Assembly (NCBI GenBank): GCA_038087875.1
Contig: JAXLNO010002386.1
Coordinates: forward strand, 434,001 to 498,000
Origin: Malacoraja senta
Lineage: Eukaryota
Direction of reading: 5' to 3'
DNA length: 64,000 nucleotides
Shown here: one piece after another, positions 1 through 43,420 of the stretch
Numbering within the stretch: the first letter of the stretch is position 1
Layout: each line of letters opens with the position of its first letter
The notes under the pieces: model-generated
The model's input: the letters and a program-made list of their open reading frames with translations, nothing else
The model's database searches: none
Told to the model about the DNA's origin: nothing
Program-made: the position numbers and the translations under genes

Positions 1-67
1 TTTTGTTAGGATGCAAATTCTATGGGAACGCTTTCTCAAAGAGATAGATAATGATGCAGATACAACA

Positions 68-2548: not shown

Positions 2549-2807
2549 GGCCTCACACACTCCTATTACTACACCCTGAACCACGGGAGTACTCATCTAC
2601 CAGAATATAGTGTCGTGGGTGTTCTGGACGGTTGTGAGATACAGTATTATGACAAAAACATGGTCATTACAGTTCCAAGACAGAAATGGATGGCGGCTGC
2701 ATTTGACAGGAATTACTGGGTAACAAATACGGTCTCTGAAACTGGTTTCCATGGAATCATCAAAGGGCAAGTCGATGAATGGATGCGGCGGCAGAACGAA
2801 ACAGCAA
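2549..2807 (+). CDS. MHC class I-like alpha1-domain exon (nonclassical; appears frameshifted near its 5' end)
   Basis: AG acceptor at 2547-2548, GTTAGT donor at 2808 (phase 1). Reads YYYTLNHGSTHLPEYSVVGVLDGCEIQYYDKNM...VPRQKWM...NYWVTNT...MRRQNETA, with the class I G-x-LDG, PRxxWM, YW and N86-type glycosylation motifs. Exon is 259 bp, not a multiple of 3. Confidence 0.85.
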
Positions 2808-4934
2808 GTTAGTTCATTCATTTCTATACATTTGGAGTGTGATCAATGTTCATAAAAAAACATCTCAAAGAAATTTCTCGCTGTGCCAGAAACCCAGGTT
2901 TGATCCTGACTACACGTTCTCCCTGTGACCACAGATATTTCCTCCAGGTGCTCCGGTTTCGTCCCATATCTTGAAAACGAGAGAGTTTGTAGGTTAATTG
3001 GGCTCTGTAAATTACTCTTGTGTGCTGAGAATGGGTGAGAAAGTGGGATTACATAGATGTGTAGGAAGGAACTGAAGATGCTGGTTTACAGCAAAGATAG
3101 GCACAATGTGCTGGAGTAACTCAGCGGGACAGGCAGCATCTCTGGATACAAGGAATGGATGACTTTTCAGGTCAAGACCCTTCCTCAGACAGAGTGTTTC
3201 CCCTGGCTTACTCCAGCATTTTGTGTCCATTTTGGGATAACATAGAACTAGTGTGAAAGATCATCGATGGTTGGCATGGAATTGGTGGGCAGAATGGCCC
3301 ATTTCCATGCTGAGTCACTAATCTAAGAACTGCAGATGCTGCAAATGTGAAATAAAAACCAAAAATGCCATTGTCTGATGGCTTCATTGTCAGTTTATCA
3401 CCATGGAAACCTGTCATTACCTTATCAGTGATACCCGCTATGTCCAACCATGCCTCCCACTCCTGTCTGTAACTTACACATTCTCACAATTCTGAAGCAT
3501 TAATTTTGTTTCTCTTTCCATAGGTTCTGTTGAACCTGCTATGCTTCCAGCATTTTACAAATCATTGAAATGTTGGCGGCTTTTTGAATGGTTAAAATCC
3601 CTTGCGTACCTCACCAATTGTTTTTACTTTTATTGACAAATGTTGAAAGAAAAGTAGTGTGAAATATTTAAAGGATAACCTAAATGGCATTGTGGTTCAG
3701 CCGTAGTGATGCTGCCGTAGTGCCAGAGACCCAGGGTTGATCCTGGCCTCAGGTGCTGTCTGTACAGAGTTTGTACGTACTCCCCGTGACGTGCGTGGGC
3801 TTTTCCCGGGTGCCCCGGTTTCCTCCCACACTCCAAGCCTGTATGCCAAAGCGGATCACTGGTCACTGTGGACTCTAAGGGCTGTTTTCGTGCTATATCT
3901 CTAAATTATCTTGGGCACCAATTGTAAAGTAGGCTGTCCAAATCCGTCTGCACCACACTTGTATATTCATATAATTTGCAATTGGACTTGTTTTATATTG
4001 TAAATCAATAAGTCCTATCACCATTACTGTGTTAATTCAATGACATTCGTAGTGTACCATTGAACAAAGCAGGACTAGGCATGGGGGAACCATCGTGAGG
4101 TGGGGGACAAAGGAGGACCTGGTGTGGGAGACTTTCTAACTTTGTCGGTGCCCTTTATGTGAAGAATCTTGACATACGTTGGGTTTACAAAACAAAGAAT
4201 TTTACTGTGACTTGTCACATGTCACAATAAAGTATCATTCATTCATGATTAATCATTTCTGAAAACATTGCTTTTTGTTACCTCTTTGGTTACACATTAA
4301 ACAAATTATATTATTAATCTTTAACTGGACTAAAACAGGGTGAGGGTACAAACAGGGAACAATACATCAAAATATTATGCACTGGGCATAATTTCTATCA
4401 ATTTCCACATCTTGCAATATTTATTATTATTTTCAAATTATATGTGAATACATGTGAATGACGTTTATTAGATTATCATCTGATTCATAGAACCATGTTT
4501 ATTGAATCATATTGCCTTCAAAAATAAGTTTTTTAATTTGCATTATTTATGGTGCACATATTATCTGCAACATTGTTATGTTTATGAGATTTATGAACAT
4601 ATTGTCGGGGCTCAAGGGTGTGAACAAGAGGGAGAGATTGGGCAAGTCAGGGCTTTATTCCATGGAGCACAAGAGGCTGAGGGGTGTCATATAGGGGTGC
4701 TTAAAATCATGAGGGGAATTGATAGACTGTATGCCCAGAGCCTTTTACCCAGAGAAGGGGAATAAAATAACCAGAGGACATGGGTTTAATGTGAGAGGGG
4801 AAAGATTTAATTGGAACTTGGGACAATCTTTGTGCTCAGAGAGTGGTCAGCATATGGAATGACCTGCCAGAGAATGGAGTTGCGGCAGGAACAATAACAA
4901 TATTTAATAGACACATGGACAGGAACATGCAAAG

Positions 4935-5400
4935 GTAGATAAAAGTGCTGGAGAAACTCAGCGGGTGAGGCAGCATCTATGGAGCGAAGGAAATGGGCAA
5001 CGTTTCGGGCCGAAACCCTTCTTCAGACTGATGTGGGGGTGGGGGTGGGGGGCGCAGGAAGAAGAAAGGAAAAGGTGGAGCCAGTGGGCTGAGGGAGAGC
5101 TGAGAAGGGGAGGAGAATGTAAGGGCTACCTGAAATTAGGGAAGTCAATGTTCATACCGCTGGGGTGTAAACTGCCCAAGCGAAATATGAGGTGCTGCTC
5201 CTCCAATTTACGGTGGTCCTCACTCTGGCCTTGGAGGAGACCGAGGGCAGAAAGGTCGGATTTGGAATGGGAGGGGGGAGTTGAAGTGCTGATCCACCGG
5301 GAGATGAGGTTGGTTGTTGCGAACCGAGCGGAGGCGTTCGGCGAAACGATCGCCAAGCGTGCGCTTGGTCTCACCGATGTAGAGCAGCTGACATCTAGAG
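4935..5400 (-). mobile_element. Penelope-like element 3' fragment (GIY-YIG C-terminus plus terminal module) inserted in a CR1 3' remnant
   Basis: ORF 5126-5428(-) contains DLSALGLLQGQSEDHRKLEEQHLIFRLGSLHPSGMNIDF; terminal CTGAAGAAGGGTTTCGGCCCGAAAC motif at 4995-5030(-). Confidence 0.85.
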
Positions 5401-6309
5401 AGAAACGTTTTGAATGATGTCCACCCATTGCAGGGTAAATGGGACTAGCTTAAATGGGGTATCTTGATTAGCATGGACAAGTTGGGCCAAAGGGCTTGTT
5501 TCCCTGCTGTGTGACTCTCTATGACTGCTTTATAGCAAAGAGCGCTGTTGCCTCACAGCTCCAGTGATCCGGGTTCAATCATCTCCAGTGCAGTCTGTGT
5601 GGAGTATAAGCATTCTCCCTATGACAATGTTTGTTCTCCAGTTTCCTCCCACATACCAAAATGTGCTGAATCAGTAGATTAAGCCACCGCTGCAAATAGG
5701 TGGATTTGTGGCATTGATAGAAATGAGAAAGATCCGTTTTGGGGAAAATTAATGTTGGAATAATTTTGTTCTCTGGGCTAGAGTGGGCTCAGGAGGCTGA
5801 AAGGCCTCTTTCTCTGTCACATGGATTTATGGGCAGTTATTTATCCTTGAATTGCCTTCTTTCTCATTTTAGTCAACAATGTAAAATTGAACTAACTGTC
5901 TGGATTGAACTATTTAACAATTGTAGATGAAAGGAAGAGCAGAGGCTGCTTTCCTCCACACACAAAGTGCTAAGGAACTCAACGGGTCAAGCGGCATCTT
6001 TGGGGAACATGGGAAGGCAGATATTTCGGGTGAGGATCCTACTTCAGACTGAAATTGGGTAACGTTAGAACATGCTTTGTACTCACACTCGCAGTCCAGT
6101 CTTAGTTTTCAAGGATTTTTTGCTATTCACAGCTTGTAGTTGTTACATATTCAGCAGAGAGAAGATGAGACAAACTAAAGCACCTGCAAAGCACAACTAA
6201 AAGACCGCAGAAAGAAGCTTGAAAAGAAGGCTCTTATCTAAACAACGTACTTTCAAGAGAGAGTTAGATTTAGCTCTTAAGGCTAAAGGAATCAAGGGAT
6301 ATGGGGGAA

Positions 6310-8112
6310 AAGATTAGTTAAAACAAATGTAGGTCCCTTGCAGTCAGAAACAGGTGAATTGATCATGGGGAACGAGGACATGGCAGACCAATTGAATAAC
6401 TACTTTGGTTCTGTCTTCACTAAGGAAGACTTAATTAACTACCGGAAATAGCAGGGGACCGGGGGTCAAATGAGATGGAGGAACCGAGTGAAATCCAGGT
6501 TAGCCGGGAAGTGGTGTTAGGTAAATTGAATGGATTAAAGGCCGATAAATCCCCAGGGCCAGATAGACTGCATCTAAGAGTACTTAAGGAAGTAGCCCCA
6601 GAAATAGTGGATGCATTAGTGATAATTTTTCAAAACTCTTTAGATTCTGGAGTAGTTCCTGAGTATTGGAGGGTAGCAAACGTAACCCCACTTTTTAAAA
6701 AGGGAGGGAGAGAGAAAACGGGGAATTACAGACCAGTTAGTCTAACATCAGTAGTGGGGAAACTGCTAGAGTCAGTTATTAAAGATGGGATAGCAGCACA
6801 TTTGGAAAAGGGTGAAATCATTGGACTAAGTCAGCATGGATTTATGAAAGGTAAATCATGTCTGACGAATCTTATAGAATTTTTCGAGGATGTAATTAGC
6901 AGAGTGGATAAGGGAGAACCAGCGGATGTGTTATATCTGGACTTTCAGAAGGCTTTCGACAAGGTCCCACATAAGAGATTAATATACAAACTTAAAGCAC
7001 ATGGTATTGGGGGTTCAGTATTGATGTGGATAGAGAACTGGCTGGCAGACAGGAAGCAAAGAGTAGGAGTAAACGGGTCCTTTTCAGAATGGCAGGCAGT
7101 GACTAGTGGGGTACCGCAAGGCTCAGTGCTGGGACCCCACCTATTTACAATATATATTAATGATTTGGACGAGGGAATTGAATGCAACATCTCCAAGTTT
7201 GCGGATGACACAAAGCTGGGGGGCAGTGTTAGCTGTGAGGAGGGTGCTAGGAGGCTGCAAGGTGACTTGGATAGGCTGGGTGAGTGGGCAAATGCATGGC
7301 AGATGCAGTATAATGTGGATACATGTGAGGTTATCCACTTTGGTGGCAAAAACAGGAAAGTAGACTATTACCTGAATGGTGGCCGATTAGGAAAAGGGGA
7401 GATGCAACGAGACCTGGGTGCCTTGGTACACCAGTCATTGAAAGTAGGCATGCAGGTGCAGCAGGCAGTGAAGAAAGCGAATGGTATGTTAGCATTCATA
7501 GCAAAAGGATTTGAGTATAGGAGCAGGGAGGTTCTACTGCAGTTGTACAGGGTCTTGGTGAGACTACACCTGGAGTATTGTGTACAGTTTTGGTCTCCTA
7601 ATCTGAGGAAGGACATTCTTGCCATAGAGGGAGTACAGAGAAGGTTCACCAGACTGATTCCTGGGATGTCAGGACTTTCATATGAAGAAAGACTGGATAG
7701 ACTCTGCTTGTACTCGCTAGAATTTAGAAGATTGAGGGGGGATCTTATAGAAACTTACAAAATTCTCAAGGGGTTAGACAGGCTAGATGCAGAAAGATTG
7801 TTCCCGATGTTGGGGGAAGTCCAGAACAAGGGGTCAAAGTTTAAGGATAAAGGGGAAATCTTTTAGGACTGAGATGAGAAAAACATTTTTCACACAGAGA
7901 GTGGTGAATCTGTGGAACTCTCTGCCACAGAATGTAGTTGAGGCCCGTTCATTGGCTATATTTAAGAGGGAGTTAGATGTGGCCCTTGTGGCTAAAGGGA
8001 TCAGGGGGTATGGAGAGAAGGCAGGTACAAGATACTGAGTTGGATGATCAGCCATGATCTGGCTCGAATGGCCGAATGGCCTACTCCTGTGACTATGTTT
8101 CTATGTTTCTAT
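6310..8112 (+). mobile_element. 5'-truncated CR1 LINE with RT domain
   Basis: ORF 6475-7866 has [45 protein letters not shown] and [11 protein letters not shown]; frameshifted C-terminus (ORF 7787-8038); (CTATGTTT)n tail. Confidence 0.95.
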
Positions 8113-8812
8113 AATTCAGATTCAGATTCAGATTCAGAAAACTTTATTGTCTGTCGTACAGAAAATCTTCTTTGACGTGGCTCAACATACAAACAGGACA
8201 ATGTACTGATAAGCAGTCATACAACACAGATTTCTGCGAGCACACACCGTGTGTATAGATCTTAAAAGCAAGTATAAACATTAAAAACTGTAAAAATAGA
8301 TAAGATGAAAGTTGTGGATACGTGTAAAGTGACAGTGCGTCAGGGTTAATTTGTCCATTGTTCATTTTTTATTTATGCTGTTTATGGCAATGGGTATGAA
8401 TGAGTTTTTGTGGATGTTTTTCTTAGATAGGGGGACTTTATATTGGCGGCCTGATGGCAGAAGTTGGAAGGACTTGTGCAGGGGGTGGGTGGGATCCTGT
8501 GTAATGAGGTTGGCTTTCCTTTTAACTGCCTGGGTGTGGAGTACTGAGAATTGATTTTGAGTTTTGCCAGTTATTTTGCTTGCTTGATTGATGATCCGGG
8601 AAAGCTTTGATTTGTCTTTGACAGAGGTGAGGGTGAACCAGGATGTGATGTTAAAGGTGAGTACAGATTCTGTAAGTGATTTATAGACAGCTGTTAAAAT
8701 GTCCTGTCTGACATCAAAGCTCCTGAGTTTCCTCAGCAGGAACAGGCGTTGCTGTGCCTTCTTGTACACAGAGTCTGTGTGCTGGGAGAAGGACAGGCGG
8801 TTAGTATACAAT
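8113..8812 (-). mobile_element. Rex1/Babar-like (L2/CR1 group) LINE 3' fragment
   Basis: ORF 8362-8811(-) has KKAQQRLFLLRKLRSF...ESVLTFNITSWF...DPTHPLH...LLPSGRQY; (TCAGAT)n tail at 8113-8137. Confidence 0.8.
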
Positions 8813-9318
8813 TAGTATATAATTAGCTAATTAGTATACAAATTAGCTATTTGTGGTGTTTCTTGAAAACACGAAGACGAGAGAATGTAAAGGATCTGCA
8901 GAACAACTAAATGACTGCAGAAAGCAGCTTGAAAAGAAGGCTCTTCATCTATACAACATCATTATTTTTTATTCAGCTATCATTGTTTGTAGAGTTTCTT
9001 ATTGGAATGAAAACATCATCCAAGTTTTGACCCTTCCTTATTACGCCTGGTCCCAGGGGCATGGTTGGCATTAGCTCATTACCTTCATCGTAATAAAGAG
9101 TTGTTGTTCACAGTTGTGCCTAGGTTTTTATCAATTATAACCTTGAGTTCACAAACTGTTCTTTGTCTCTGGGCTTAAGTTCACAGACTCTCCTTTTCAA
9201 GGAGTGAGCAGTTTTAAGCAAACTGACTTCAGCAAATCTTTACAAATTCCATCAACCCCCCCCCCCCCCCCACTTTGATTCATCAATCAATGCCAGAGGG
9301 AATGAATCATCTAAGTAA

Positions 9319-12300
9319 AGGGGCCTGTCCCACTTGCGTGTTCTTGCGTGTTCTTGGAACGCAAATTACGCGTTGAGCCACGATGGTCCGGCGAAGGTCG
9401 GGCGCGATTACATGCGTACGCACAGCCGTCTGGAGCGCGTGACGTTATTTGCAGATGGACACGAAGCTGGAGTAACTCAGCGGGACCGGCAGCATCTCTG
9501 GAGAGAAGCAATGGGTGATGTTTCGTGTCGAGACTCTTCTTCAGTCTGAAAAGAAGGGTCTTGACCCGAAACATCACCCATTGCTTCTCTCCAGAGATGC
9601 TGCCGGTCCCACTGAGTGACTCCAGCATTTTGTGTCTATCTTCAATTTTCTTGGCCCCGCTCTTTTTTTTTTTTTTTCCGTAAATGTTTTTTTTATTAGA
9701 TTTTTAAACAAATGTACAATTTACAAGGAAGGGTAGAAAGCTCACACAATTTAAAAAACATTTACACAAAACTATCAAATTAAAATATTAACATTTTTAT
9801 CTATAATATATTCAACCTGCGGTGACCAGCGTTCACAGAAGGCCTCCACAGTCCCCGTGGACACCGCGTGTTCCCTCTCTAGGGACACGCGGGCACGGAC
9901 GTAACCCTGGAACCCTGGAAAAGGGGCAGGCAGCCGACCACTGTGCAGCCATCGACCGCCCGCTGCCTGGACCCGCGAATGGCCATCTTGGCCAGGCCCA
10001 GGAGCAGTCCGACAGGGAGACCCCCTCCTCCCTCCCGACCCTCCCCCCTCTGTACCGGGTGCCCATAGATTAATAGCGTTGGACTAAAATGTAGCCAAAA
10101 CTTGAGGAGCAGCCCTTTCAGATACTCGAACAGGGGCTGCAACCTCTCGCACTCTATATACACGTGGAACACGGTCTCTTCCTCACCGCAGAAATGACAC
10201 GCAGGGGAAGAGTCCGTGAACCGGCTCAAGTACCTATTACAGGCCACGGCTTTGTGCAAAACTCTCCACCCCAGGTCCCCGATGTAAAGGGGGAGGACTC
10301 CCTTGTAGAGAAACCTCCACTGGGGACCGCTCCCCTCGTCAGGTGGTAACACGGACCGCCAGGGTGTGTCTGGACGGAAGACGAGAGCGAGGAAGTGGAG
10401 AGTGTGCAAGAGCAGCCTGTACAGTACACGCCTCTCCGCGCCACGGAATGGCACACTGGGCATCTCAGAAAGGCGGCTCATGTTGCATGGGGCCGGCTCT
10501 CGGGGAGGGTCCCGGGCCATGGGCCCTATGAACAATTCCGACTGAGCGGGGGTAAGCTCGTCCGGAATCGCTCCATGCACACGCCTCTCCTCGACACCCA
10601 CCGTCACAGCCACGACACCCCCCTCCCCCTGAGGAGCAGGGCCCTGGCTGAAGTTGACCAAATTCCTAGCCTTCAGGAGTTCACGGTAAAAGCCAGGCAA
10701 CTCCCGCCTAGCGCGTCGACTCATGCCCGCTACCGGGAGCCGGGAGCCGGGAGCCCTCCTAAAGGCACCTCCCCTGACGGAAAAAGTACGTCGCCAGCAC
10801 GTGCCATTTAGGAGGGTAGTCCGAGTAGACGTACCTCCGCAGGGTCCTGAGTCGGAGAGCCGCCACCTGGGTACGAATACAGACCAGCGCCTGACCACCC
10901 TCCTCCAACGGGAGACTCAGAACCCCAGCAGAGACCCAGTGGTTCCTCTCCCCCCAGAAGAAGTTGACCAATCTCCTCTGTAACATGGTTATAAAATAAG
11001 AGGATGGGACCATAGTGGCCATCCGGTACCACAGCAGAGAGGCCACCAGCTGATTTATAACTACAGCCCTTCCCCGGTAAGAGAGCACACCAAGTAGGCC
11101 TGACCAACGTCCAAGCCGGGCGACCACTTTCGCCTCCAGCTCCTGCCAGTTCGCCGGCCACCCCTCCTCAGCGGGACTCAGGTAGACCCCCAGATAGAGG
11201 AGGTGCGTGGTACTCCACGCAAAACCTGCCATCTCCTCCGGCAGGGAGCCCACCTGCCACCCACCCACCAAGAGACCAGAACACTTCCCCCAGTTGATCC
11301 TGGCGGAAGATGCAGCTGAGAAAACCTGCTGGCACTCACACATCCTCCGCAGGTCAACAGGGTCGGTGAACATCAGAAGGACATCATCGGCGTAGGCCGA
11401 GAGAACCACCTCCATCCCTGGCCCCGGTAAAGCCAGGCCTGTCAACCTCCTCCGGAGAAGGCACAGGAAAGGCTCGACACAGATGGAATACAGCTGGCCG
11501 GACATGGGACATCCCTGACGAACCCCCCTCCCAAAGGGAATGGGGGCCAACAAAGAGCCGTTGACCTTAACAAGGCATTCTGCAGCAGTATATAACAGTC
11601 GGACCCAGGCCACAAAATGCGGTCCAAATCCGAACACCTGCAGAGTCCCAAGAAGGTAGTCGTGCTCCACCCTGTCAAACGCCTTCTCCTGGTCGAGGGG
11701 GAGAAAGGCGACCGACTGACCAGCCCCCTGGGACAGATGGATCAGGTCCTGGAGCAGATGGATATTGTCCTGGATGGACCGGCCCGGGACTGTGTACGAC
11801 TGGTCAGGGTGGATCACCTGGGACAGCACGGGACCCAGGCGATTCGCCAATGCCCGTGCAAAGACTTTATAGTCCGTGCTGAGGAGAGAGACCGGGCGCC
11901 AGTTCTTCAAAAGGCGAAGATCACCCTTCTTGGGCAGCAGCACAACAACTGCCCTGCGCCAAGAGAAAGGCATCTCCCCGGTCGCCAGGCTCTCCCCCAG
12001 GACCTTCATATAGTCGCCCCCCAGGAGGATGGGACCATAGTGGCCATCCGGTACCACAACTCCCTAATCAGTAGTTTATATCCAAAGCAGTCTTTCTGCT
12101 GTTGCTGCACCTCCACTCTTTTCCAGCAGTTAAATAGTCTTGTGAAGGCTTTCTTGGTAAGCAACAGAAGCAGTCTCCTCCTGATAAGATAGGAATGTCC
12201 GTGCCAATCCTCCCCGTCGTCAAAAATGGAGCTTCCTTATGCTTCTTCCCCGGCTTCAACGAAATCCAAGGCACTGTTGCCGTTCTTACCCAGCCCACCT

Positions 12301-12959
12301 GGACCGGGCAAGTCGGTGTAGGAGGGAGCTTTCCGATGTTACTGACCACAAACACCACTCTAGACTCAGCTCCCACTCGTTCAAGTGTAACTTGGCCTTC
12401 CGCCAGCCACTGCCGCTCCTACGACTTTACAGATACACGGACAAATCCTCCCTAATTAGAGGAATCTTTGAACAAAGAAAGTCTCTGCAGATCGACAAAG
12501 CTCTGAACTGCAAAGTCTGACTGCTTTTGTTTCTCCCTGCCAAACAAAACCTTCCGAAAAGTTCATCCAATCCTCCCCGCCAGCAGAACAGCTCCTCACC
12601 TGGCCCTGCTCTGGGAGTAGAAGTGGGGGCGGATCCGGACCACAACGGCCGTGAGCCCCAGGCCGTGTCCGGCGATCGTTTGCCCACTTCTGCTGCTGTT
12701 GAAAGTGAGACGTTGCGTCGCGCCAGGGTCTTGGGCCTGACCCACTTTGGCCGTCAGTTCCGCGACAGGCCGTTGGCGCACGAAGATTTCATTCACTACA
12801 AAATTTTCGGAGCCCCGCGCAATGTCGCGCACAACTACATACCCCTCCACACTTCCAAGTGCGACTGGCCCCGTGCGGCCATACAATGCCCGTACGCCTC
12901 AACGCGACCACAAGGTCGCATAATTTGTGTGCCAAGGACACGTAAGTGGGACAGGCCCT
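9319..12959. mobile_element. PIF/Harbinger-type non-autonomous element (MITE) carrying nested insertions
   Basis: TIRs AGG(G)GCCTGTCCCACTT / AAGTGGGACAGGCCCT, imperfectly extending about 45 bp; TAA on both sides (9316-9318, 12960-12962) fits a 3-bp TWA TSD. Confidence 0.8.
9664..12600 (-). mobile_element. Tx1-clade (L1 group) non-LTR retrotransposon, internally deleted
   Basis: ORF 10759-12057(-) is the RT (KNWRPVSLLSTDYK, DQEKAFDRVEH, GVRQGCPMSG, AYADDV). ORF 9879-10898(-) is the C-terminal Zn knuckle (CHFCGEEETVFHVYIEC). Poly(A) reads as poly-T at 9663-9678. Flanking TGGCCC(C/T)GCTCT at 9652-9663 and 12601-12612. Confidence 0.85.
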
Positions 12960-13919
12960 TAAAAATACCAAGGAAAGGTAGCGCAGCTACACATCACTGG
13001 ATACCTTTAACCTGTTCAATGCCATCGCCAAGTACACTAGGGGTCATGGCCAATAGTGAAAAATAAACTTGGCAGTGAACAGCTTAATGGTCTCCATATT
13101 TTAGAGAAAGCCTTCAATGCCCATGATGGGTGAGCCTTATTATATCTATGTTTCTCTAAATATAGGAAGCACTTTTGTGGTAAAAGATGGGGCAGCTCGG
13201 GCCTCGAAAAGATCCAACCTTATGTGCAGCTTTACATTTGTTTATATGCAATAAGCAAAAAGAACACAATAGAAGATAAAACATGATAATAATTATAAGC
13301 AAAGCCAAGAGATCGTGGCCTTACACGAGATGCTGCCTTGCAGCACCAGAGACCCGGGTTTGAACCCGACTACGAGTGGTGACTGTACGGAGTTTGCATG
13401 TTCTCCCCGTAACCTGCGTGGCTTTTCTCTGAGATGTAGGTAAATTGGCTTGGTGTAAATGTAAATTGTCCCTACTATGGGCTGAAGGGCCTGTTTCAGC
13501 ACTGTATCTCCAAAGCAGTGGTTCTTAACCTGGGGGTCGTTTGTGGTTTATCTGGGGGGTCATGAATGGGTTGAAAAGAACATCAATTTGTTGAGCCTAT
13601 TTTTAGGAACCTAACAAAGGTACATACCACACACAATATTTTTTTCACGAATGCGCGTACGTATAAACAGGGCCTATGAGAGGGGGGTGCAGGGGGTACA
13701 TCGTACCCGGGAGCTGAAGGAGGGGGAACGGGAATTTCCTGAAATCTCAGAAAATGTTTGCATATATTTTGTGAAGACTAGCATTCACTATTTGTGTGAG
13801 CCGACAGAGTTTTATATATCGTAATTCGTAGAAATTGTGATCCGTAATAAAGCAGGGAATTTTAACTGGCGAGTGTGTGGTCGGAGTAACCTTATTAAAA
13901 GAGGGGGAAGGGGAAGAAC

Positions 13920-14150
13920 CATCACTACTGATGGATCTTCCCTGCAGGAGGGGGGGGGGGGGTGCAGCATTAGGACCCAACAGAGTCATCACTACTGATG
14001 GATCTTCCCTGTAGGAGGAGGGAGAACATGAGGACCCCACAGAGTCATCACTACTGATGGGTCTTCCCTGTAGGAGAAGGAGGGGGAGAGCATGAGGACC
14101 CCACAGAATCATCACTACTGATGGGTCTTCCATGTAGGAGGGGGGGAGCA
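13920..14150. repeat. Minisatellite, 4 units of about 59-67 bp
   Basis: CATCACTACTGATGG(A/G)TCTTCC recurs at 13920, 13987, 14046 and 14110 with G-rich linkers. Confidence 0.9.
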
Positions 14151-14545: not shown

Positions 14546-16136
14546 AGTGGGAGGGTGAATTTTATAAATGAAGTTAAAACCATTAGATCTGTTGAACTTG
14601 TTAACAGACTATTGACTTGGTAACCTGTTTCCAAATGTTTGTGTTGGCTTCAGAATACCATTAACAATTCCAGCAACAGTAGCTTCTGCAGAGGTCATTT
14701 AGCAAACTCAAGCTGATTAAGAATTATTTAAGGTCGACAATGTCTCATGAACGTCTTGTGGATTTGGCCAGGCTAAGTATTCAAAGTCAGTTTTATTCAT
14801 CACATACACCCGAAGGTGCAGTGCAGTGAATTTGCCAGCAGTGATACACGTAAAAAGAACACACAATACACAATAAAATTGAACACAAACATCCACTACA
14901 GCATTTTTCACTGTGGTGGAAGGCAACAAGTTTCAGCAAGTCCTCCTCCTTTGTTCACCCGTGTTCGGGGCCATAACCCCTCCGTAGTCGCAACTAGGGA
15001 CGGCCCGATGTACAAGGCCCTCTCGTTGGGATGATCCAAACTCCGATGTTGGGACGGACAAACACACTCTGTGCGGCTTGGAGGTCCCGACTCGGCACTT
15101 TCCTACTGGAGACCGCAGCTTCAGGATGTTATAGGCCGCAGGCCAGCAGTTCTGCGGTTAAATATTAAAGGATGTTTCAATGTGAATTCTTTCTCCTTAT
15201 CTGTATTGTAGCATAAACAAAGATGTTCAAAACAAAGGTAGATAAAATGCTGGAGAAACTCAACGGGTGAGGCAGCATCTATAGAGTGAAGGAAAACAAA
15301 TGTGCTTTCTGATCCTTTTATTTTATTTATACTTATTTATATTTATCATGGCGGGAGTATAGGGACATAAGGCCTCAAATGCAGAAAATCAACAGAGCGC
15401 CCCATCCCACCCCTCTCTCATCTTCCATACCCCTTTTTGCCGTGCAGGCTACAGCTCATGGCATAAAACTGTAGCATAGTGGATAAAAACAGGATGACTA
15501 TTGGAGAAGGGAAGGGGGCCCAAAAGATACTTTGTACCCACTGATAAAATTCCTCTGAGGCCCTGCGTATACACGCACAAACAGTGTGTGTTGTGAACCA
15601 TGTCTTCCAAGATGCGCATGTATCGTGAGGCATTTCCCAAGTTGGGCTTCACAAGCATTGTTCAAAATCCGTGGTCAAGCTGCAATGTGTTCTCTGTGCC
15701 AAGGTGTTGAGTCACGAGAGCATGAAGCCCAGCAAATTGAAGATCCATTTGGAGTCTTGTCACAGCAACCTGCCGGGGAAGAGCGTGGACTGTTCAAACG
15801 AAAAGAAACCGTACTCAAGGGTTCAACGGGGCACTGTGCTCATCAAAATGAAGCAGCTTTGGAGGCTTCATACCGGATTGCTTATCGAATCACACAGACT
15901 AAGAAACCTCACAGCATCGGTGAAGAGCTTATCAAGCCATGCCTTCTCGAAGCAGCAAAGTTGGTGCTGGGGGAAGAGCAGTCAAACAAGTTCAGGCAGA
16001 TTTCCCTTTTGAATGACAGTCAAAAGTTGAATCTCGGATATGAGTAATGATATTCTGCTGCAAGTAGTGAGGGCTGTGACGAGCAGTCCAGTGTATTCAC
16101 TGCAACTGGACAAGGCAACAGATGTTGCCTCATGTT

Positions 16137-16260
16137 GTTAAAGAAGGAACTGCAGATGCTGGAAAATCGAAGGTACACAAAAATGCTGGAGAAACTCAGC
16201 GGGTGCAGCAGCATCTATGGAGCGAAGGAAATAGGCAACGTTTCGGGCCGAAACCCTTCT
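16137..16260 (-). mobile_element. Short Penelope terminal fragment with 14-bp flanking direct repeat
   Basis: TGTTGCCTCATGTT at 16123-16136 and 16261-16274 flanks an AACTGCAGATGCTGG...CGTTTCGGGCCGAAACCCTTCT module inside the hAT transposase. Confidence 0.75.
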
Positions 16261-16296
16261 TGTTGCCTCATGTTCCCAACTACTAGTCTACGTTTG

Positions 16297-16873
16297 TTAG
16301 AGATTAGAGATTAGAGATTCCTTTATTTGTCATTCAGACCTTTCGGTCTGAACGAAATTTCGTTGCCTGCAGTCATACATATAATAATAAATAACAAAAC
16401 ACGGACGCAGCTGTAGTTGCGGGAGCTCCAGAAAAACAGGTCACCCACCTGTGACCTGCGAGCTCCCGACGATGTCGTCCACCGGGCCCGCGGCCGAGCC
16501 TCCGGATTCAGGTCGCCACCAGTGTCCTCGGTCGCCACCGCCGGAATGCCACCGCAGCCCCGAAGTTGGCCAGCCCCGCGCTGGTAAGTCCTCACTCTGC
16601 CTCCGGAGCCTCGAGGTCGGTCGGTCGCAGTTGGAGTTGGAGGCCGGCAGCTCCGCCATTAGGCCTCAGCGCAGACGGAGGCAGAGAAGGGGGATACGAC
16701 AAGAAAAAGTCGCACTCCCCCGAAGGAAGAGACAAAAATCATGTTTCACCCCCCCACCCCACACATAGACAACCCAATAAACAAAAATTTAAACTAAAAG
16801 AAAACAACAAAAAAAGTAAAAACAGACGGACTGCAGGCGAGCCGCTGCTGTTCGACAGCGCCGCCACTTCCGG
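16297..16873 (-). mobile_element. Non-autonomous retroelement with Rex1/L2-type 3' tail, inside the hAT transposase
   Basis: Minus-strand ATGACAAATAAAG followed by an (AATCTCT)n tail; GC-rich non-coding body; hAT reading resumes after about 16893. Confidence 0.55.
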
Positions 16874-17205
16874 AGTGGCAGCGCTGTCGAACCTCGATGG
16901 AGTAGCCATGACGGAGGAGTACCTGTTCTCGGAGCCATTGGCTACTACCACTCGGGGAGAAGATGTGTTCAGAATGCTGGAAGCCTTCCTCATCAAACAT
17001 GAGCTTGGCTGGGAACGCCTTGTCGGGATGTGTACAGATGGGGCACCTTCCATGGTCGGTTGCAGATCCAGTTTCCAAGCCTTCGTGAAGGTTGTCGCTC
17101 CCCATGTCTCCTTCACCCACTGCATGATACATCGCCATGCTTTAGCAATGAAGACTCTCGCTCTTGGTCTTCGAGAAGTGCTTTCAGATGTGGTGAAGAT
17201 TGTGA

Positions 17206-17346
<141 letters not shown>

Positions 17347-18479
17347 TGAGAGGAAATAGCGCTGTTCTTGGAGAGAAGGTGTACTGAGAAGGAGAATCAG
17401 CTTCATGAAAAGAGGCAGGATGAACTGTTCGTGATGAAGGTTGCTTACTTGGCTGACTTCTTCGCCGAGATGAATTCCTTGAACCTGTCACTTCAAGGAA
17501 ACCTCCCAATGGCAAAGTGGCAGCATTCAGGAGGAACCTTTACCAGAGAAGAGTCCAGGACGGTGACTCGACTATCTTCCCTGAGATGACAACTCTCCTG
17601 GATGCTATGCCTGATGCTGAATGCCACTTCCACGAGGAGATCTCAACCCACCTTCTGGCAATTAGTGAAGCCATCGAACGTTATTTCCCCAGACTGGACG
17701 ACTGCTCTCATGATGAGTGGATCATCCGACCCTTTTCCGTTGAAGACGGTGGCATCAGTGATACTGACGTGACTGCGAAGGTTGAATTTTACCGAATTCG
17801 TGGAGATGCGCAACTCAAGAGTGACTTCATGGAACAAGGGCTCGCCACGTTTTGGCTGGAAGTGAAGGACTGTCCTGTTCTTTCAAAGAGGGCCTTGACC
17901 CTATTGGTCCAGTCCCCCTCAACCTCTCACTGTGAGGGTGGATTTTCAACTATGGTAACTCTGAAAACGAAGGTACGCAATAGGCTTGTGATCGACACTG
18001 ACATGAGATGCTGCCTGTCGAGCATTCGTCCATGTTTTGATTGCCTGATGACTGCGAAGCAATTTCAGCCATCCCATTGACTGAGCATTGGCCGCGATGT
18101 TAAAGTCTTGCAGGCTCTCACAGTTGGAGCCCTAAAGTCGATCCCTGACAAGGATTGCGAGCTCCATGATGGTAAGTCCACAAGCTCCTGCGATGGATCT
18201 CCCGGTCGATCTCTAGCAAAGGCCGCCATTCCTCAATGTTAGGCCGCATTGTGGACGGAGATACGATACAGAAAATATCGCATCAACGTCGAGGTAAGAG
18301 AATAGGAAAAGTTCCACACAACTCCCCCAACCCCCCCTCCGCCCAAAAAACAAGCTTAAGAACACTAAAGAATATACATTTAACACGTACAAAACGGACA
18401 CAAAGAAGGAAGGGACAGACATACCGTTGGCGAGGCAACCATTGCAGCAAAAGGTGGATTGCTTAAGGATATAGAAGGG

Positions 18480-19370
18480 AATATGTGCTTGGAGTTTGTG
18501 GATATAGGCGAGGTTTGGTTTCACCAAGGAAGACATGTAGAATAGTAAGGACCATTAATAGTAAGTACATCATAAAATCCTCCAACATTTCTGCCACCTC
18601 CAACTGGATCCCACTACTGGTCACATCTTCCCATCTCCACCCCTTTCTGCTTTCCGCAGAGACCTTTCCCTCCGAAACTCCCTGGTCAACTCGTCCCTTC
18701 ACACCCAAACCACCCGCTCCCCGGATACTTTCCCCTGCAACCGCAGGAGATGCAACACCTGTCCCTTTACGTCCCCCCTCGACTCTGTCCAAGGACCTAA
18801 AGTCTTTCCAGGTGAGGCAGAAGTTCACTTGCACCTCTTCCAACCTCATCTACTGTATCCGCTGTTTCAGTTGTCAACTTCTCTACATCATGTGAGACCA
18901 AGTGCAGGCGCGGCGATCGTTTTGCTGAACACTTCCGCTCAGTCCGTCTTACCCTACCCGATCTCCCGGTGGCTCAGCACTTCAACTCCCCCTCCCATTC
19001 CGAATCTGACCTTTCTGTCCTGGGCCTCCTCCATTGTCAGAGTGAGGCCCAGCCCAAATTGGAGGAACAGCACCTCATATTTCGCTTGGATAGTCTATAT
19101 TCCAGCGGTATGAGCATTGACTTCTAATACTTTCGATAGCCCTTGATTTCTCTCTCCATCCCCTCCCCCTTCCCAATTCTGCCACCAGTCTTACTGTCTC
19201 CGCCGACATTCTATCTTTGTCCCTCCCCTGACATCAGTCTGAAGAAGGGTCTCGACCCAAAACAATGCCCATTCCATCTCTCCAGGGAAGCTGCCTGACC
19301 CACTGAGTTACGCCAGCATTTTGTGTCTCTCTTCGATTTTAACATCTGCAGCATCTGCAGTTCTTTCTTA
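18480..19370 (+). mobile_element. Penelope-like element 3' part (GIY-YIG endonuclease, degraded)
   Basis: QVRQKFTCTSSNLIYCIRC...LLYI, DRFAEH, PVAQHFNSPSH, KLEEQHLIFRL; followed by the terminal CTGAAGAAGGGTCTCGACCC module at 19239. Confidence 0.9.
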
Positions 19371-19499
19371 CACATGGAGAATCAATGTGGAGAATGCTAA
19401 CATGCAGGGACACTTTGAAGTTAAGCAAGAAGGAGATGTTGGATCACTTGAAGAGAAATGTGGATAAATCCCCAGGACAGAGGGGTGTAGTGGATGATA

Positions 19500-19950
19500 A
19501 TAATAAGCGTTGAAAACATTAGTGCCGTGCTGGTTTCCGATGGGCACGGTGACGGACGCACCACACATCTCTGTCCTCCATGCAGCTGGCAGGCGCCTCG
19601 TTTATCTCTACACATGCGTCTTCCATCAACGTCTTCACCATCGTCTTGATTGGCCATCCTGGGTCAAGTCTTCCATGGGTGGGTTCCCACAGCACAACCT
19701 TGTTTGCTGGCATTTCTGGGTGGCGGAGCCAGAGACCTGCGAGCCTCATCCTTCTCAACGTGATCTTCTCGGTCAGAGGTGGATTCTCCCCATAGAGCTG
19801 GGCGTTGGTGATGTGGTCCCTCCATCTGACATTTTGAACTTTTCCGAGCATTCGGGTGTAGGTACCATCGAGAGTCTAGGACAGTGCTGGAGTGAGAGTC
19901 CATGCCTCACACCCATACAATAATATGGTCTCTACAGTTGCACGGAAAGA
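19500..19950 (-). mobile_element. RTE-clade LINE 3' fragment
   Basis: ORF 19519-19851(-): VRWRDHITNAQLYG...RRMRLAG...HPEMPANKVVLWEPTHGR...MEDRDVW. Confidence 0.75.
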
Positions 19951-20109
19951 CAAATATTCAGGCTGTAGTTCAGTGACAAGTAGAGTTCTGCAGGGATCCG
20001 TGCTGTGACCCTTGCTACTTGTGACATATATAAATGACTTGGACCCTGGTGTTCAGAAATTACCCATTCATAACAATGAATCAAATAATGATTTTTATTT
20101 TTATTTCAG

Positions 20110-20385
20110 ATTATCACTACGTTCAAGGACAGTTTGGTTGTGAGGTGAACGATCACAGTCCCACTGCAGGGATATTGAAGTTGGCTTTTGATGGAAGTTA
20201 TGCATTTAGTTTTGATAAGGACAAATTAAAGTGGACGGTGCATGATCCAATAGCTGAGCCCTTCAAAGAGAAATGGGACAAGAATGAAAAAATGAACCGT
20301 TATTTTAAGAGCTTGTTAGAACATGACTGTGTGGATCTATGGCTTACATACTATGCAATTGGAAAGACATACCTGACCAGAAAAG
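20110..20385 (+). CDS. MHC class I-like alpha2-domain exon (intact, 276 bp)
   Basis: TTTATTTCAG acceptor, AG/GTGAGT donor, phase 1-1. Reads YHYVQGQFGCEVNDHSPTAGILKLAFDGSYAFSFDKDKLKWTVHDPIAEPFKEKWDKNEKMNRYFKSLLEHDCVDLWLTYYAIGKTYLTRK, with both alpha2 cysteines, FDG, FD...W and KW. Confidence 0.95.
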
Positions 20386-20702
20386 GTGAGTTCAGAACAA
20401 AGGATGTTGTTTTGTGATGGTAGGCAATGAGTAATATTTCACTCTGAGGCAATGAGTAATATTATCTCTGACCCAATCATGACAGAGGGAAAGGTCATTC
20501 GGCCCATTGCTTCTATGCTAGTTTTCTATGCAATGTCGACAAACTGTTCCACAGCTCTCTCTCGCAACTTGCACTCGGCTCCCTTGGATTCTCCTTGGAT
20601 TCAGCTCCACGACAGATAATTTGCAATGTCCAACTAACTCACTGGCACGTCTTTGGTATATGGGACAAAACTGGAGCACATGGAGGAAGCCAACTGAGTC
20701 AT

Positions 20703-22700
20703 AAGGTCATAAGTGATGGCTGCAGCATTAGAACATTCGGCCCATCAAGTCGACTTCGCCAGTCAATCATGGCTGATCTATCTCTCCCTCCTAACCCCAT
20801 TCTCCTGCCTTCTCCCCATAACCTCTGACCTGCATACTAATCAAGAATTAAAAATACCCATTGACGGACTCCACAGCCTTCTGTGGCAAATAATTCCACA
20901 GAATCACCATCCTCTGACAAAATAAATTCCTCCTCATCTCTTTCCTAAGGGAATGTCCTTTAATATTGAGACTATGACCTCTCGTCGTAGACTCTCCCAC
21001 CATTGGAGACATCCTCTCCACATCCACATCTATCCAAGCCTTTCACTATTTGTTTAAAAAAATATATATATTTTTATTAGAAGCATGTGCATATCATAAT
21101 ACAAACATTTCTTATATATCAATCCTACTTTGCTAATAGGTGGGAATCCAGCTATCAAAATAATAGTGGTCCTCCTTTATCAATTGTATATTAAATCTGC
21201 TTCTATTTAGTTTTGTTTTATAGATAGAAAGTGAGAAATTTAAAAAAAGGCATGATAAAGAAGAATGGAATAATTTACCAATAATACAAATTTGGAGATA
21301 AGTCCGTAGGTTATAAAGCATAAACTATTCATCTAATCCTGAGCTTGGATTTCAGTCAGATTCCTGTGCTGAACCAATTTACCCTTTCAAAAAATCAATA
21401 AATAGAAACCTTATTCTATTAAATAATTCAAGTTTGTCAATTAAGACAAGTCTAGTTCTTTCCAAATGTAAGGTCTCTGACATTTCCATAATCCACATTT
21501 TAATTGTGGGGGTTATAGGACCTTTCCAAAATTTTAATATTAATTTTTTCCCAATTATTATACTATAATCAAGAAAGTTTCTTTGGTTTATTGTAAGTCT
21601 TAGGCTTTGTTCTGACGTTCCTAATATTATTAGTTTTGAGTCGGGATCCAATTGGGTATTGACTACTTCAGAAATTATTCTGAAAATGTCCTTCCAGAAA
21701 TTTTTGGTTTTTATACAATTTACAAAGGTATGAGTTAAATTAGCCTCTAAATGCTGGCATTTATCACAAATAGGAGAGATATGTGGGAAGATTCTATTTA
21801 ATTTTGTTTAAGAATAATGTAATCTATGTAATACTTTAAATTGTATTAAGGCATGTCTGGCATTTAACGAGCATTGATGTATATATTGTAGACTTTCGTC
21901 CCAAATATCTTTCGTTATGGGTTGGCCTAATTCATTTTCCCATGTGTGTCTATATAAATCCGTCGGCGAGACCTCACTATCTAAGAGGGTATTATAAATA
22001 TGAGATATTAATTTTTCTGTATTAGGATGTTTATTCAAACATCAAGGATTTCTGGTTCCCTAGTTCTGTAATCTTGTGTATTTGATTTAATGTAATCTTT
22101 AAGTTGTAAATATCTGAAAAAGTTATTTGAGTGTAGTCCGTAAATCTGTTGTAACTCCTGAAATGAAAGAAAAGTGCTTTTCCTATAAAGATGACCAATC
22201 TTTTTAATTCCATAATTTTTCCATTGTGTAAAGCCTTTATCCAACATGGAGGGTTTGAATAAAGGGTTGTTTATAATGGGGAGACAGAGTGATAAATTAT
22301 CCAATTTTAAAGTCTTTTTTAATTGTTTCCAAATTCGTATACCACTATATATTATAGGATTTTCACTATAGGTTTTTTAATGCAATTTTGTGGGAGAAAA
22401 CATAATCAAACCAATTTCAAAAGGCAAACAGACTTTCACTATTTTGTATGATTCAATGAGGTCCCCCCTTTATTCGTCTAAACTCCAGCAAGTACAGGCC
22501 CACTGTCATCAAATGGTCATCATATGTTAACCCATTCATTCCTGGGATCATTCTTGTACACCTCCTCTGGACCCTCTCTAGAGCCAGCACCTCCTTCCTC
22601 AGATATGGTGCCCAAAATTGCTCACAATGCTCCAAATGTGGTTTGACTGGCGCCTTATAGAACCTCAGCATTACATCCCTGTTTGACAGGGAGAAAGTGT
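20703..22700 (-). mobile_element. CR1 3' fragment split by an L1 insertion
   Basis: CR1 tail at 20703-21051 and ORF 22453-22716(-) (FYKAPVKPHLEHCEQFWAPYLRK) are collinear once the L1 is removed. Confidence 0.75.
21052..22432 (-). mobile_element. AT-rich L1-clade LINE 3' fragment with 12-bp TSD
   Basis: SLNARHALIQFKVLHRLHYS, KKLILKFWKGPITPTIKMW, FRYLQLKDYI; CTTTCACTATTT at 21040-21051 and 22433-22444. Confidence 0.8.
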
Positions 22701-23319
22701 AATTGATGTCTTTCATAGTAGTTAACCATGGATTTTATTGACCACAGTTGACAGCCCCTAATGGGATTGCATGTCTATCACACATTTCAAAAGAGCACAG
22801 CGTTAAGCTTCGAAGGGCAAAATTTACACGAGATCTGCAGGTCAAGTGTTTTTTTTCACAGAGAGAGATTGATACCTAGAATGCGCTACCAGGAGTGGTG
22901 GTAGAGGAGGACATGATAATGGTGCTCAAGAAGGTTTTGGACAGGCTTGTGGGTATGCAGGGAATACAAGGATATGGATCACATGCAGGCAGTGGAGATT
23001 AGTTTTGGTTTAGTTTAGAGATAGAGTATGGAAACAGGAACTTTGGGCCACTGAGTCCACACGGGCCAGCAATTGTCCATTCACTATTTCTGTCCTTCAA
23101 GCTAGGGACAATTTACAGAAGCCAATTAACCTACAAACCTGCACGTCTTTTGTATTTGGGAGGAAACCGGAGCCCCCAGAGAAAACCCACAGGGTGACAG
23201 AGAGAACGTACAAACTCCATCCAGACAGCACTCTAGTCAGGATCGAACCCGGGTCTCTAATGCTGTAAGACAGCCACTCTATCACAGTGCCTCTGTGTTG
23301 CCTTAGTTTAACTTGGTAT

Positions 23320-24740
23320 CCTGTTGCTCTTACTTCAACTGTTGCTCTTACTTCAACTGTGATGAAGTGTTTTGAGAGGCTGGTCCTGGCCCACATTAAA
23401 TCCTCACTCCCATCCACCCTGGATCAGCATCAGTTTGCATACAGAGCTAACAGGTCAACAGAGGACGCCATCAACATAGCTCTACATTCTGCACTGACTC
23501 ACCTGGAGCGCCCCAGCTCATATGTGAGGATGTTGTTTGTAGATTTTAGTTCTGCATTCAATACCATCATCCCCAGCAGAATGGTGGACAAACTGGGTGT
23601 AAATGCCAACACATGCAGATGGATCAAGGACTTCTTAACAGATCGCCCACTGACTGTCAGGATGGGGTCCAATCACTCCCCAGTCCTGCCGCTCAGCACA
23701 GGAGCGCCACAAGGTTGTGTGCTGAGTCCCATTCTCTACACAATATACACCCATGACTACACACCTACACACAGCACAAACCGGATCATTAAGTTTGCAG
23801 ATGACACGACTGTGGTGGGGCTGATAAATAACAACGACGAGTCTGCCTACAGAGATGAAGTCCAAAAACTGACTGTCTGGTGCACTAACAATAACCTGGT
23901 ACTCAACTCAACCAAAACAAAAGAACTGGTTATTGACTTCAGGAGGAGGAGAGAGGAACCTGCTCCTCTCTAGATCAAAGGAGACATGGTGGAGAGAGTC
24001 ACTGACTTTAAGTTCCTGGGCACATACATCTCCCAGGACCTCACATGGACAGTGAACACCATCACTCTTGTAAAGAAGTCACAGCAGCGGCTATATTTCC
24101 TGAGGTCTCTGCGGAGAGCAAATGTCTCACAGCAGCTGCTGCTGTCCTTCTACCGGTGCGCCGTGGAAAGCATCCTCTCCTATGGCATCCTGGTATGGTT
24201 TGCTTGCTGCACTGTGGCTGAAAGGAAGCCACTACAGAGAGTTATTAAAGCAGCACAGAGCATCACAAACGCTCAACTACAACGCTCAAACCCTGAAAGA
24301 CATTTACAGGGCCCGATGTTTGCGTCGGGCCACAAACATCACACAGGACTCATCCCACCCTGCCAACCACCTTTTCACTCTGCTGCCTTCTGGGAAGCGA
24401 TACAGGTGTCTGAAGGCCCACACTTGAAGACTAATTAACAGTTTCTACCCGTGTGCCATTAAAGAACTAAACTCAAATAGATAACACTGGGGGCAACACA
24501 ACACAATTCGTGGTGCAATATAAAAAATTGTCTGCTGGAGTGTGCAATATAATGTGCAGTATTTCTACTATCTATTTATTTATTTTATTCATTGATCTTG
24601 CTGGTAATATGAGAGTTAATGTGTTTTTGTACTTTTAAATCTTTTTATCCTGTCTTTTATTGTATACAACTGAAGGAGATGCATTCAAATTTCGTTGTAC
24701 AGTTGCTGTGCAATGACAATAAAACGTATTGTATTCGATT
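23320..24740 (+). mobile_element. Rex1/Babar-like LINE, 5'-truncated
   Basis: ORFs 23287-23973 (PVALTSTVMKCFERLV, FVDFSSAFNTI, GAPQGCVLSP, KFADDTTVVGLI) and 23986-24438; TGACAATAAA 3' end with GTATT-type tail. Confidence 0.9.
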
Positions 24741-26516
24741 CTGCTGATTTGCATTTGTTGTATTTATAGGTGTATCTATCATTGCCATTTCCTGCTTGCT
24801 GTGTAAACTTCATCTGAATAAGGAAATGAATTGCAACCTATATATATAACCATAAACTAATCTGAATTTGACATTTATTATTTTGACATAAAATGGCATA
24901 ACCTCTGTACTCTCTTACACAACTAGATATCTTTTAACTGTATCATTAAGTCTGGCGCTGATCCCAGCAATCACTTGAAAGAGATTGTGGCCATCTTTAA
25001 GGGTGATCAATCCATTGTGCAGCCCCTTTCAAGATGTTCTTTGGGAAAGAGACTTTTAAAATTGGTTTCTTTTTTTTTTCAATTCCAATGAAGAGTCCTT
25101 GACCTGAAAAGTCAATTTTGTCTCACTCTCTGATCACCTTAAACTTTCTTTGGTTTAAAGAGATTCAGCATAATATACTGAGAAAGCACCTTGACTGATG
25201 GCGTAATTGTATTGTGTGGCAATTCCAACACAGGAGGCTGCAGAGGGTGGTGACCTCATCCCGATCTATCAGGGGAACAACACATCTCACCATAGAAAGT
25301 ATCTATATGAATCATCTCAAGTATGTGCCATCGTCCATGCCCACTTCTTACTGCTTCCCCCAGGCTGAAGGCTCACACAACCAGCTTCAAACCAGCTACT
25401 TTCCCACAACTTTCAGGTGTTTGAACCAACCTGCATAACCCAAATCCTGACTTGGCAACGGAACATTTCGGACCACTTCTTGCACTACCATGAATTCGTT
25501 TTTCTCATTGTGAACACTGATGTCCTGCTTTTCATATATTTTTTATTATTGTTCTTGCCTTTCACCTCTTGAGGAGGAAGTCAGAAATGTTCTCACAGAA
25601 GTTCAAGACACAGTTTTACTCCGTGCTGTTCATGATGTCAATGGCCAAACAAAATAACTTTTACTGAATACTTTAATTTTTATAAAAATAAGTGTAAAGT
25701 TTATTTTGTCTGATGCAGGGTCTGATTACTTGTTGCACACGGAACAGGAGTGCGTGTAGAATGAATGGGTGTGGCATTGCATAAGGACAAATATGCAAAA
25801 GGACAGCGAAACTGGGAGGTGACGACTTCTCAATCAATGTTTGAAGCATTCATTCGTGCTAAATGTGACCGGGTAATATCAACAGCAATCTGTCTCCTGC
25901 AGATAATGTCAAAGCTTCTCGACATCAATGAAAAGAAAATAATTGCAAATCGCAGGTAATTCAACGCCGTCGCGAACTGGTTTATGTTATTATGTTTTAG
26001 AATCAAATAAACTGTTCGTGCCTGAGAAAACTACCTCGCGATAAAAGCAGATACAGGGAACCACAGATGCTGGTTGACAAAGAAAAAGACACGAAGTGCT
26101 GGAGTAACTCAGCGGGTCAGGCAGCATCTCTGGAGAACTTGGATAGGCGATGAATCTGGTCGGGACCCTTCTACAGACTGAGTGTGGCGTGGAGGTTTTT
26201 TTTTAGGGGTAGATATTAGTATCTTTGGTAGATATTGGTGCCCCTAGAAACAGTATATCCGACCAACCATCACCACAACCTCTCCAACCACCACAATCAG
26301 TGTGAAGAAGGGACGCGACGACAAACTCCATCTTATCGATGTTCTCCAGAGATGCCGCCAGATAACTTTGAACTCTCGGAAGTAAACTGTTCGATGGAGG
26401 GCTGATTCATAGAACTATTATTTCATGTGTTTCCGACAAATATATTTAAAGCACGGGGCAGATCATAGATTGACTTGTAGTTGTAGATGTACACGGGAGT
26501 GCGGGGGAACTCCAAC

Positions 26517-41369: not shown

Positions 41370-43420
<2,051 letters not shown>

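Follow-up and report, generated by a model that had tools for sequence, protein, structure and literature searches.

We analyzed a 64,000-nt window of the skate Malacoraja senta genome (contig JAXLNO010002386.1; coordinates below are window positions) that holds exons of a non-classical class I gene of the major histocompatibility complex (MHC) upstream of an NXPE3-like gene. What the window contains is very probably the 5′ half of one gene copy from a known three-domain lineage of non-classical class I, reduced to a truncated, frameshifted, and recently inactivated fragment, and this copy most likely makes no class I protein. Intact members of this lineage are ordinary three-domain heavy chains, anchored in the membrane and with a Y-x-x-I tail. 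Here the gene is cut within intron 3 at 23316/23317, where a young 5′-truncated long interspersed nuclear element (LINE) starts, and the DNA past the LINE corresponds to a different Amblyraja chromosome with an NXPE3-like gene on it. A separate 2-bp deletion in alpha1 puts an early stop in the domain. An original prediction, made from the letters of the window, had left two options for this locus, an alpha3-less elasmobranch lineage or a truncated relic. The second is supported by the breakpoint, the missing alpha3 and transmembrane (TM) exons, the presence of alpha3 in orthologues, and the frameshift. The first is refuted by an observation that the prediction itself had named as decisive, namely that the Amblyraja and Leucoraja loci have a normal alpha3, TM, and tail.

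Class I exons and their lineage

The segments at 2549–2807 and 20110–20385, both on the forward strand, are real class I alpha1 and alpha2 exons, as their splice sites and their matches to Pfam MHC_I and to chain A of PDB entry 9CH4 indicate. Alpha1 (259 nt) is bounded by a conserved acceptor (…tctag/GG, the slash marking the exon boundary) and a conserved donor (CAA/gttagt). Alpha2 is intact, runs from phase 1 to phase 1, has the 276 nt found in orthologues, and lies between an acceptor (…tttcag/) and a donor (AAAG/gtgagt) that are likewise conserved relative to orthologues. It matches Pfam MHC_I (E = 3e-13) and carries the Cys101–Cys164 disulfide pair. The 268-aa 9CH4 chain A is by far the best solved chain for both exons (E = 5e-36 for alpha1 and 2e-34 for alpha2, ~70% identity). 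Together, alpha1 and alpha2 are ~92% identical to Amblyraja radiata XP_032898133, and tblastn against skate orthologues gave amino acid identities of 85–93% for alpha1 and 88–92% for alpha2. Upstream, positions 1–2548 (forward strand) form the 3′ part of intron 1 and are collinear with orthologues, the leader exon lying beyond the window. Intron 2 (2808–20109, forward strand; 17.3 kb) is mainly transposon-derived, with open reading frames (ORFs) matching RVT_1 and scattered blocks collinear with orthologues. The two exons had been described as well spliced, and this description holds for their existence and their conserved AG/GT sites, but not for alpha1 as a clean exon, which has 259 nt instead of 261.

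The exons belong to a lineage that is widespread in elasmobranchs. A HMMER scan with alpha2 returned one 398-aa protein at 92% identity and two at 70%, all of them Leucoraja erinacea or Amblyraja radiata proteins annotated as “class I histocompatibility antigen, F10 alpha chain-like.” The canonical forms have 341 aa (XP_055521885 in Leucoraja erinacea and XP_032898133 in Amblyraja radiata) and comprise a leader, alpha1, alpha2, an immunoglobulin (Ig)-like alpha3, a TM segment, and a short tail ending DYQNI… (Y-x-x-I). 9CH4_A aligns across alpha1–alpha3 of the skate protein. Searching with the Amblyraja protein recovered the lineage in the skate Rhinoraja, in sawfish, and in the rays Mobula and Hemitrygon, as well as in the sharks Heptranchias, Heterodontus, Pristiophorus, Stegostoma, Scyliorhinus, Cetorhinus, and Mustelus. 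As every lineage member found across sharks and rays (17 of 17) has a C1-set domain or a length of 320–350 aa, the lineage is not alpha3-less. In a maximum-likelihood tree of alpha1 plus alpha2, the window copy fell within the skate clade (support 100/99), sister to Amblyraja plus Leucoraja and on a short end branch. We also note that Pristis pectinata yielded three diverged lineage members (P0212, P0218, and P0221), on contigs that are all listed as 19,913,265 bp and are probably one contig; if so, the lineage would be multi-copy in sawfish.

Aligned to the classical chain 5H5Z with HMMER, the window copy has F at position 143, L at 159, L at 167, and A at 123, and retains the equivalents of Y7, Y59, R84, K146, W147, and Y171 (HLA-A2 numbering), which bears out the anchor pattern of the original prediction. 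Classical class I molecules hold the peptide termini through eight invariant residues, Y7, Y59, Y/R84, T143, K146, W147, Y159, and Y171. Six of these eight are kept, and the T and Y of classical chains at 143 and 159 are replaced by F and L. Compared with classical class I (grass carp 5H5Z and shark 6LUP), the copy thus shares the fold-defining residues and the six retained positions, but differs in F143, L159, L167, and A123, and these replacements are common to the intact skate orthologues. 9CH4_A agrees with them except at 123, which is I. The replaced anchor residues are therefore a lineage trait, not particular to the window copy, and the earlier term “nonclassical,” although right, describes a lineage with annotated genes and a solved structure rather than a single copy.

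Two “CD1-like” elasmobranch lineages, UFA and UGA, are mentioned in reviews as having crystal structures and lipid ligands (PMC12562908; PMC10751288), and the 9CH4/XP_032898133 lineage is probably one of them. The lipid binding of UFA/UGA is a second-hand report in PMC12562908, and our literature search on 9CH4 and UFA/UGA returned only a review and a remark in a Molecular Biology and Evolution (MBE) paper, with no primary description. The Y-x-x-hydrophobic tail motif of CD1-like lipid presenters was seen only in the orthologues. After 9CH4, the nearest solved relatives by sequence were MR1 and classical chains, not CD1.

Missing 3′ half, breakpoint, and frameshift

Three orthologous loci were compared with the window, one from Amblyraja (L001) and two from Leucoraja erinacea (L002 and L003, the latter on JAMYXN010000161.1). 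The Amblyraja gene spans 78 kb near 0.43–0.52 Mb of CM021389.1, with the leader at locus position 10001, alpha1 at 41881, alpha2 at 53460, alpha3 at 74155–74436, TM at ~80.8 kb, and the tail at 87.7 kb. In Leucoraja, alpha3 follows alpha2 after 8.5 kb (L003) and 9.7 kb (L002), giving an alpha2-to-alpha3 distance of 8.5–20 kb across the Amblyraja and Leucoraja loci; TM and tail exons are present too, and the leader-to-alpha1 intron measures 18–32 kb. An apparent second alpha3 in Amblyraja (L001 80478–80861) proved to be the TM exon, which the BLAST alignment had carried on past stop codons. The two Leucoraja loci are near-identical gene copies (~95% across 22 kb) that differ in the sizes of their introns, maybe haplotigs or recent paralogues, and one of the two contigs stops 3 kb after alpha3. 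At L003 (10001–108607), the class I gene and a GPR139-like receptor gene ~35 kb downstream are merged in NCBI models (a 663-aa “isoform X1”). Further GPR139-like copies flank this class I gene on both sides, and the fusion models are likely read-through annotation. The window lacks GPR139, the downstream neighbor in the Leucoraja arrangement.

No alpha3 or TM sequence was found anywhere in the 64 kb on either strand by tblastn (word size 2) with orthologues that are 85–92% identical, nor did the cytoplasmic Y-x-x-I tail exon or the TM exon have a match within the window. We also searched all 2031 six-frame ORFs of the window with an alpha3 hidden Markov model (HMM) built from 127 aligned matches, and no credible alpha3 emerged. 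The sole HMM match, at 47497–47640, covers 22 residues (E = 0.016), has neither the second Cys nor the Trp, and falls in a low-identity repeat; we regard it as a chance match. The window has no runs of N, so no assembly gap hides exons. The earlier failure to find an Ig-C1 alpha3 or a TM exon in the interval before NXPE thus extends to the entire window.

Two phase-1-compatible terminal exons had been put forward as a way to a short-tailed or secreted product. Both strings exist at 24770–24849 and 25903–25931 (forward strand), but neither has homology to any class I exon, conservation, or other support. The former, which does have an AG acceptor, coincides roughly with the estimated LINE 3′ end; it offers a hydrophobic stretch of no more than 11 residues, followed by charged ones, and bears no similarity to the TM exon of the orthologues. 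The latter lies in DNA without a match in class I loci, and a 9-codon open frame is expected there by chance. Reading through past the alpha2 donor adds ~10 residues before a stop (ORF 20034–20417). Short protein fragments identical to the window alpha2, sought as transcript evidence, were not found.

The point at which the class I gene ends could be located to the nucleotide. All three orthologous loci align collinearly with window positions 1–23316, including intron 1 (1–869 and 1434–2548, at 84–89% identity) and the first 2.9 kb of intron 3 (20386–23316, forward strand), within which 21053–22433 is a lineage-specific insertion. Similarity then ends at the same nucleotide in all three comparisons, at the 3′ edge of a short interspersed nuclear element (SINE)-like repeat that occupies the orthologous place in every species compared. 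Directly at this synteny breakpoint begins the reverse transcriptase (RT) ORF of a 5′-truncated LINE (23317–24780, forward strand, 3′ end approximate; RVT_1 E = 7e-24). The RT frame is open from its first base and has one internal stop in ~375 codons, and the LINE is therefore young. The distal intron 3 of the orthologues, past the breakpoint, has no counterpart in the remaining 40.7 kb of the window.

Further downstream, 29985–36550 is collinear at 90–96% identity with Amblyraja CM021380.1 near 54.16 Mb, a region that carries an NXPE3-like gene, whereas the class I half matches another Amblyraja chromosome, CM021389.1. The junction therefore lies between 23317 and 29985, and it would lie before ~26.4 kb if a putative first coding exon at 26518–26609 belongs to NXPE. 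No NXPE gene was found near the class I gene at the orthologous loci. We infer a LINE-associated rearrangement or duplication as the origin of the join.

Independently of the breakpoint, alpha1 carries a frameshift that the original prediction had overlooked. Relative to all three skate orthologues, 2 bp are missing between 2561 and 2562 (window CACACT--CC; CACACTGATC in the three orthologues). The leader exon of the orthologues ends …GCA G/gtaagt, in phase 1. Read in phase 1, the window alpha1 gives PHTLLLLHPEPREYSSTRI and then a TAG stop at 2608–2610 (forward strand), 20 codons into the domain, the phase being taken from the orthologue leader donor, whereas the phase-1 reading of the orthologue alpha1 stays open (PHTLIYYYTLNH…). 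The alpha1 frame proposed earlier needs a phase-0 entry, and an in-frame TAG directly before alpha1 (2546–2548) rules out alternative upstream acceptors. No continuous frame thus runs from a phase-1 leader into alpha1, where the leader phase is that of the orthologues, the copy’s own leader being outside the window. The frameshift argues against function even if an alpha3 lay downstream.

Age of the lesions and alternative explanations

Some of our observations weigh against an inactivated fragment. The ratio of nonsynonymous to synonymous substitution rates (dN/dS) is ~0.3 when the window is compared with the orthologues, not above the value among intact orthologues, and the exons diverge from Amblyraja by ~4–5% while adjacent unique intron blocks diverge by ~11%. 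No damage is seen at the splice sites, the two cysteines of alpha2, or the N-glycosylation site. The 2-bp indel could be an assembly error, and as the leader exon and the sequence past 64 kb are unseen, an alpha3 could in principle follow a very large downstream insertion. The assembly error is made less likely by the nature of the change, which is complex (GAT to C) and lies outside any homopolymer. The lower divergence of the exons relative to the introns implies that the copy was constrained for most of its history; taken with the dN/dS of ~0.3 and a LINE ORF that is almost open, it suggests a recent origin for both lesions. Identity to Amblyraja is 88.9% on the class I side and ~94% on the NXPE side, and Amblyraja and Leucoraja are 94.5% identical at the class I gene. 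This greater divergence of the class I side, relative to both the NXPE side and the Amblyraja–Leucoraja pair, hints at a paralogous rather than strictly orthologous relationship between the window copy and the annotated Amblyraja gene.

The unseen flanks bear most directly on the idea of an intact but very long gene, in which the NXPE3-like gene, the LINE, and other sequence would form an insertion of more than 40 kb in intron 3, alpha3, TM, and tail would follow past the window, and the deletion would reflect a mistake in the assembly or be bypassed. Skate introns at these loci already reach 9–32 kb, the window ends 43.6 kb after alpha2, and the exons look constrained. We nonetheless consider this improbable: the 40.7 kb that follow the breakpoint contain none of the distal orthologous intron 3, the intron would have to accommodate an entire gene on the same strand that presumably brings its own terminator, and the frameshift stands independently. 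That the frameshift remains regardless also counts against an assembly misjoin of two chromosomes at 23316/23317, with a normal class I gene at the true locus. Such a misjoin would account for the match of the two sides to different Amblyraja chromosomes and for the position of the join between two repeats, but the boundary is clean, with the end of a SINE abutting the start of a truncated LINE, and does not fall inside a long shared repeat; we judge it quite improbable.

The constraint on the exons could also be read as a sign of function. Very unlikely, in our assessment, is that the 5′ half of the class I gene and the NXPE3-like gene together are a unit copied several times in this skate genome, in which alpha1–alpha2 would perhaps have been under purifying selection after the loss of alpha3, as soluble platforms or as a gene-conversion reservoir of groove variants for intact genes, and of which the window copy would be a recently frameshifted member. 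Still less credence goes to a functional alpha3-less class I-like gene comparable to ULBP/RAET1 and EPCR, with a soluble or short-tailed alpha1–alpha2 platform made through terminal exons or intron read-through. Alpha1 and alpha2 are otherwise open with conserved splice sites, the dN/dS is ~0.3, and read-through past the alpha2 donor would supply ~10 residues and a stop. A phase-1 leader, however, leads to the stop in alpha1 while the TAG at 2546–2548 blocks upstream acceptors, alpha3 is present in every orthologue, the candidate terminal exons lie in or near the LINE tail or in unmatched DNA, and the platforms of this lineage pair with their own Ig-like domain in the solved chain. A read-through or chimeric protein joining MHC alpha1–alpha2 to NXPE is extremely unlikely. 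Both genes are on the same strand, NXPE exon 1 lies only 6.1 kb after alpha2, and class I/GPR139 read-through models exist in the Leucoraja annotation, but alpha2 ends in phase 1 and NXPE exon 1 in phase 0, so that a fusion would put NXPE exon 2 out of frame. No other long forward-strand ORF covers NXPE exon 1, an AG just before 26487 leads to a stop when read in phase 1, and alpha1 is frameshifted in any case.

Among known systems, the window copy is like the 9CH4/XP_032898133 lineage in its alpha1/alpha2 identity, exon phases, splice sites, collinear introns, and placement in the skate clade, and differs in having no alpha3, TM, or Y-x-x-I tail, in its frameshifted alpha1, and in the NXPE3-like region joined to it. 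With ULBP/RAET1 and EPCR/PROCR it shares the presence of alpha1 plus alpha2 alone at the locus (ULBP2 and ULBP3 are weak alpha2 matches). In those families two domains are common to the orthologues and end in a glycosylphosphatidylinositol (GPI) or TM signal, whereas the orthologues of the window copy have three domains, and the loss can be traced to a rearrangement breakpoint. The copy resembles class I pseudogene fragments in expanded MHC-Ib families, such as the multicopy shark UBA/UEA clusters (PMC10751288), in being partial, disabled, and embedded in repeat-rich DNA. All elasmobranch class I genes have been reported inside the MHC (PMC10751288); unlike this picture, the Amblyraja counterparts of the two halves of the window are on different chromosomes.

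The NXPE3-like gene, surrounding repeats, and significance

Pfam and protein matches confirmed the earlier report of an NXPE gene downstream of alpha2 and identified it as NXPE3-like. Its putative coding exon 1 (26518–26609, forward strand) begins with an ATG, encodes a signal-anchor, and ends at a GT donor in phase 0, in a stretch farther upstream than any orthologue sequence reaches. The Neurexophilin-domain exon is contained in an ORF at 33266–34054 (forward strand; PF06312 E = 2e-34), which is 87% identical to an Amblyraja NXPE3-like protein. Two further forward-strand ORFs within 43133–46609, at 43133–43423 and 46067–46609, carry exons of the NXPE C-terminal domain (PF24536 E = 8e-15 and 1e-62). 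As the signal-anchor exon and both domains are present, the gene looks complete. Just 3′ of exon 1, GC-rich tandem-repeat blocks (26690–27180 and 28750–29100) surround a CR1-like insertion, and the one at 28750–29100 is similar to the repetitive N-terminal part of P0002, a Pristiophorus class I model that is probably a mis-annotation.

Transposon-derived sequence is prominent elsewhere in the window. Within class I intron 2, a block at 9879–12057 (reverse strand) has 60% GC against ~43% in its surroundings and encodes a 432-aa reverse-transcriptase ORF (RVT_1 E = 1e-39). A run of ORFs at 15586–18080 (forward strand), broken by GC-rich low-complexity sequence at ~16.0–16.8 kb, looked by eye like a hAT-type transposase or a domesticated relative; two pieces of this run had no Pfam match at E 0.001. 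Downstream of the NXPE3-like exons lies a long terminal repeat (LTR) retrotransposon (54997–59306, reverse strand) that seems to be very young; its pol ORF runs uninterrupted for 1115 aa, and its gag ORF has 350 aa.

Collectively, these data remove a tempting false lead, that of an elasmobranch lineage of two-domain class I molecules similar to ULBP or EPCR. We attribute the two-domain appearance of this locus to a mapped rearrangement and a frameshift in one copy of a lineage with annotated genes and a solved structure. As a discovery the fragment carries little weight, and its by-products are an exact breakpoint at 23316/23317 and a diagnostic 2-bp deletion. Both could help to tell apart the many members of this gene family in the skate genome, and to ask whether the class I/NXPE join had a single origin followed by duplication.

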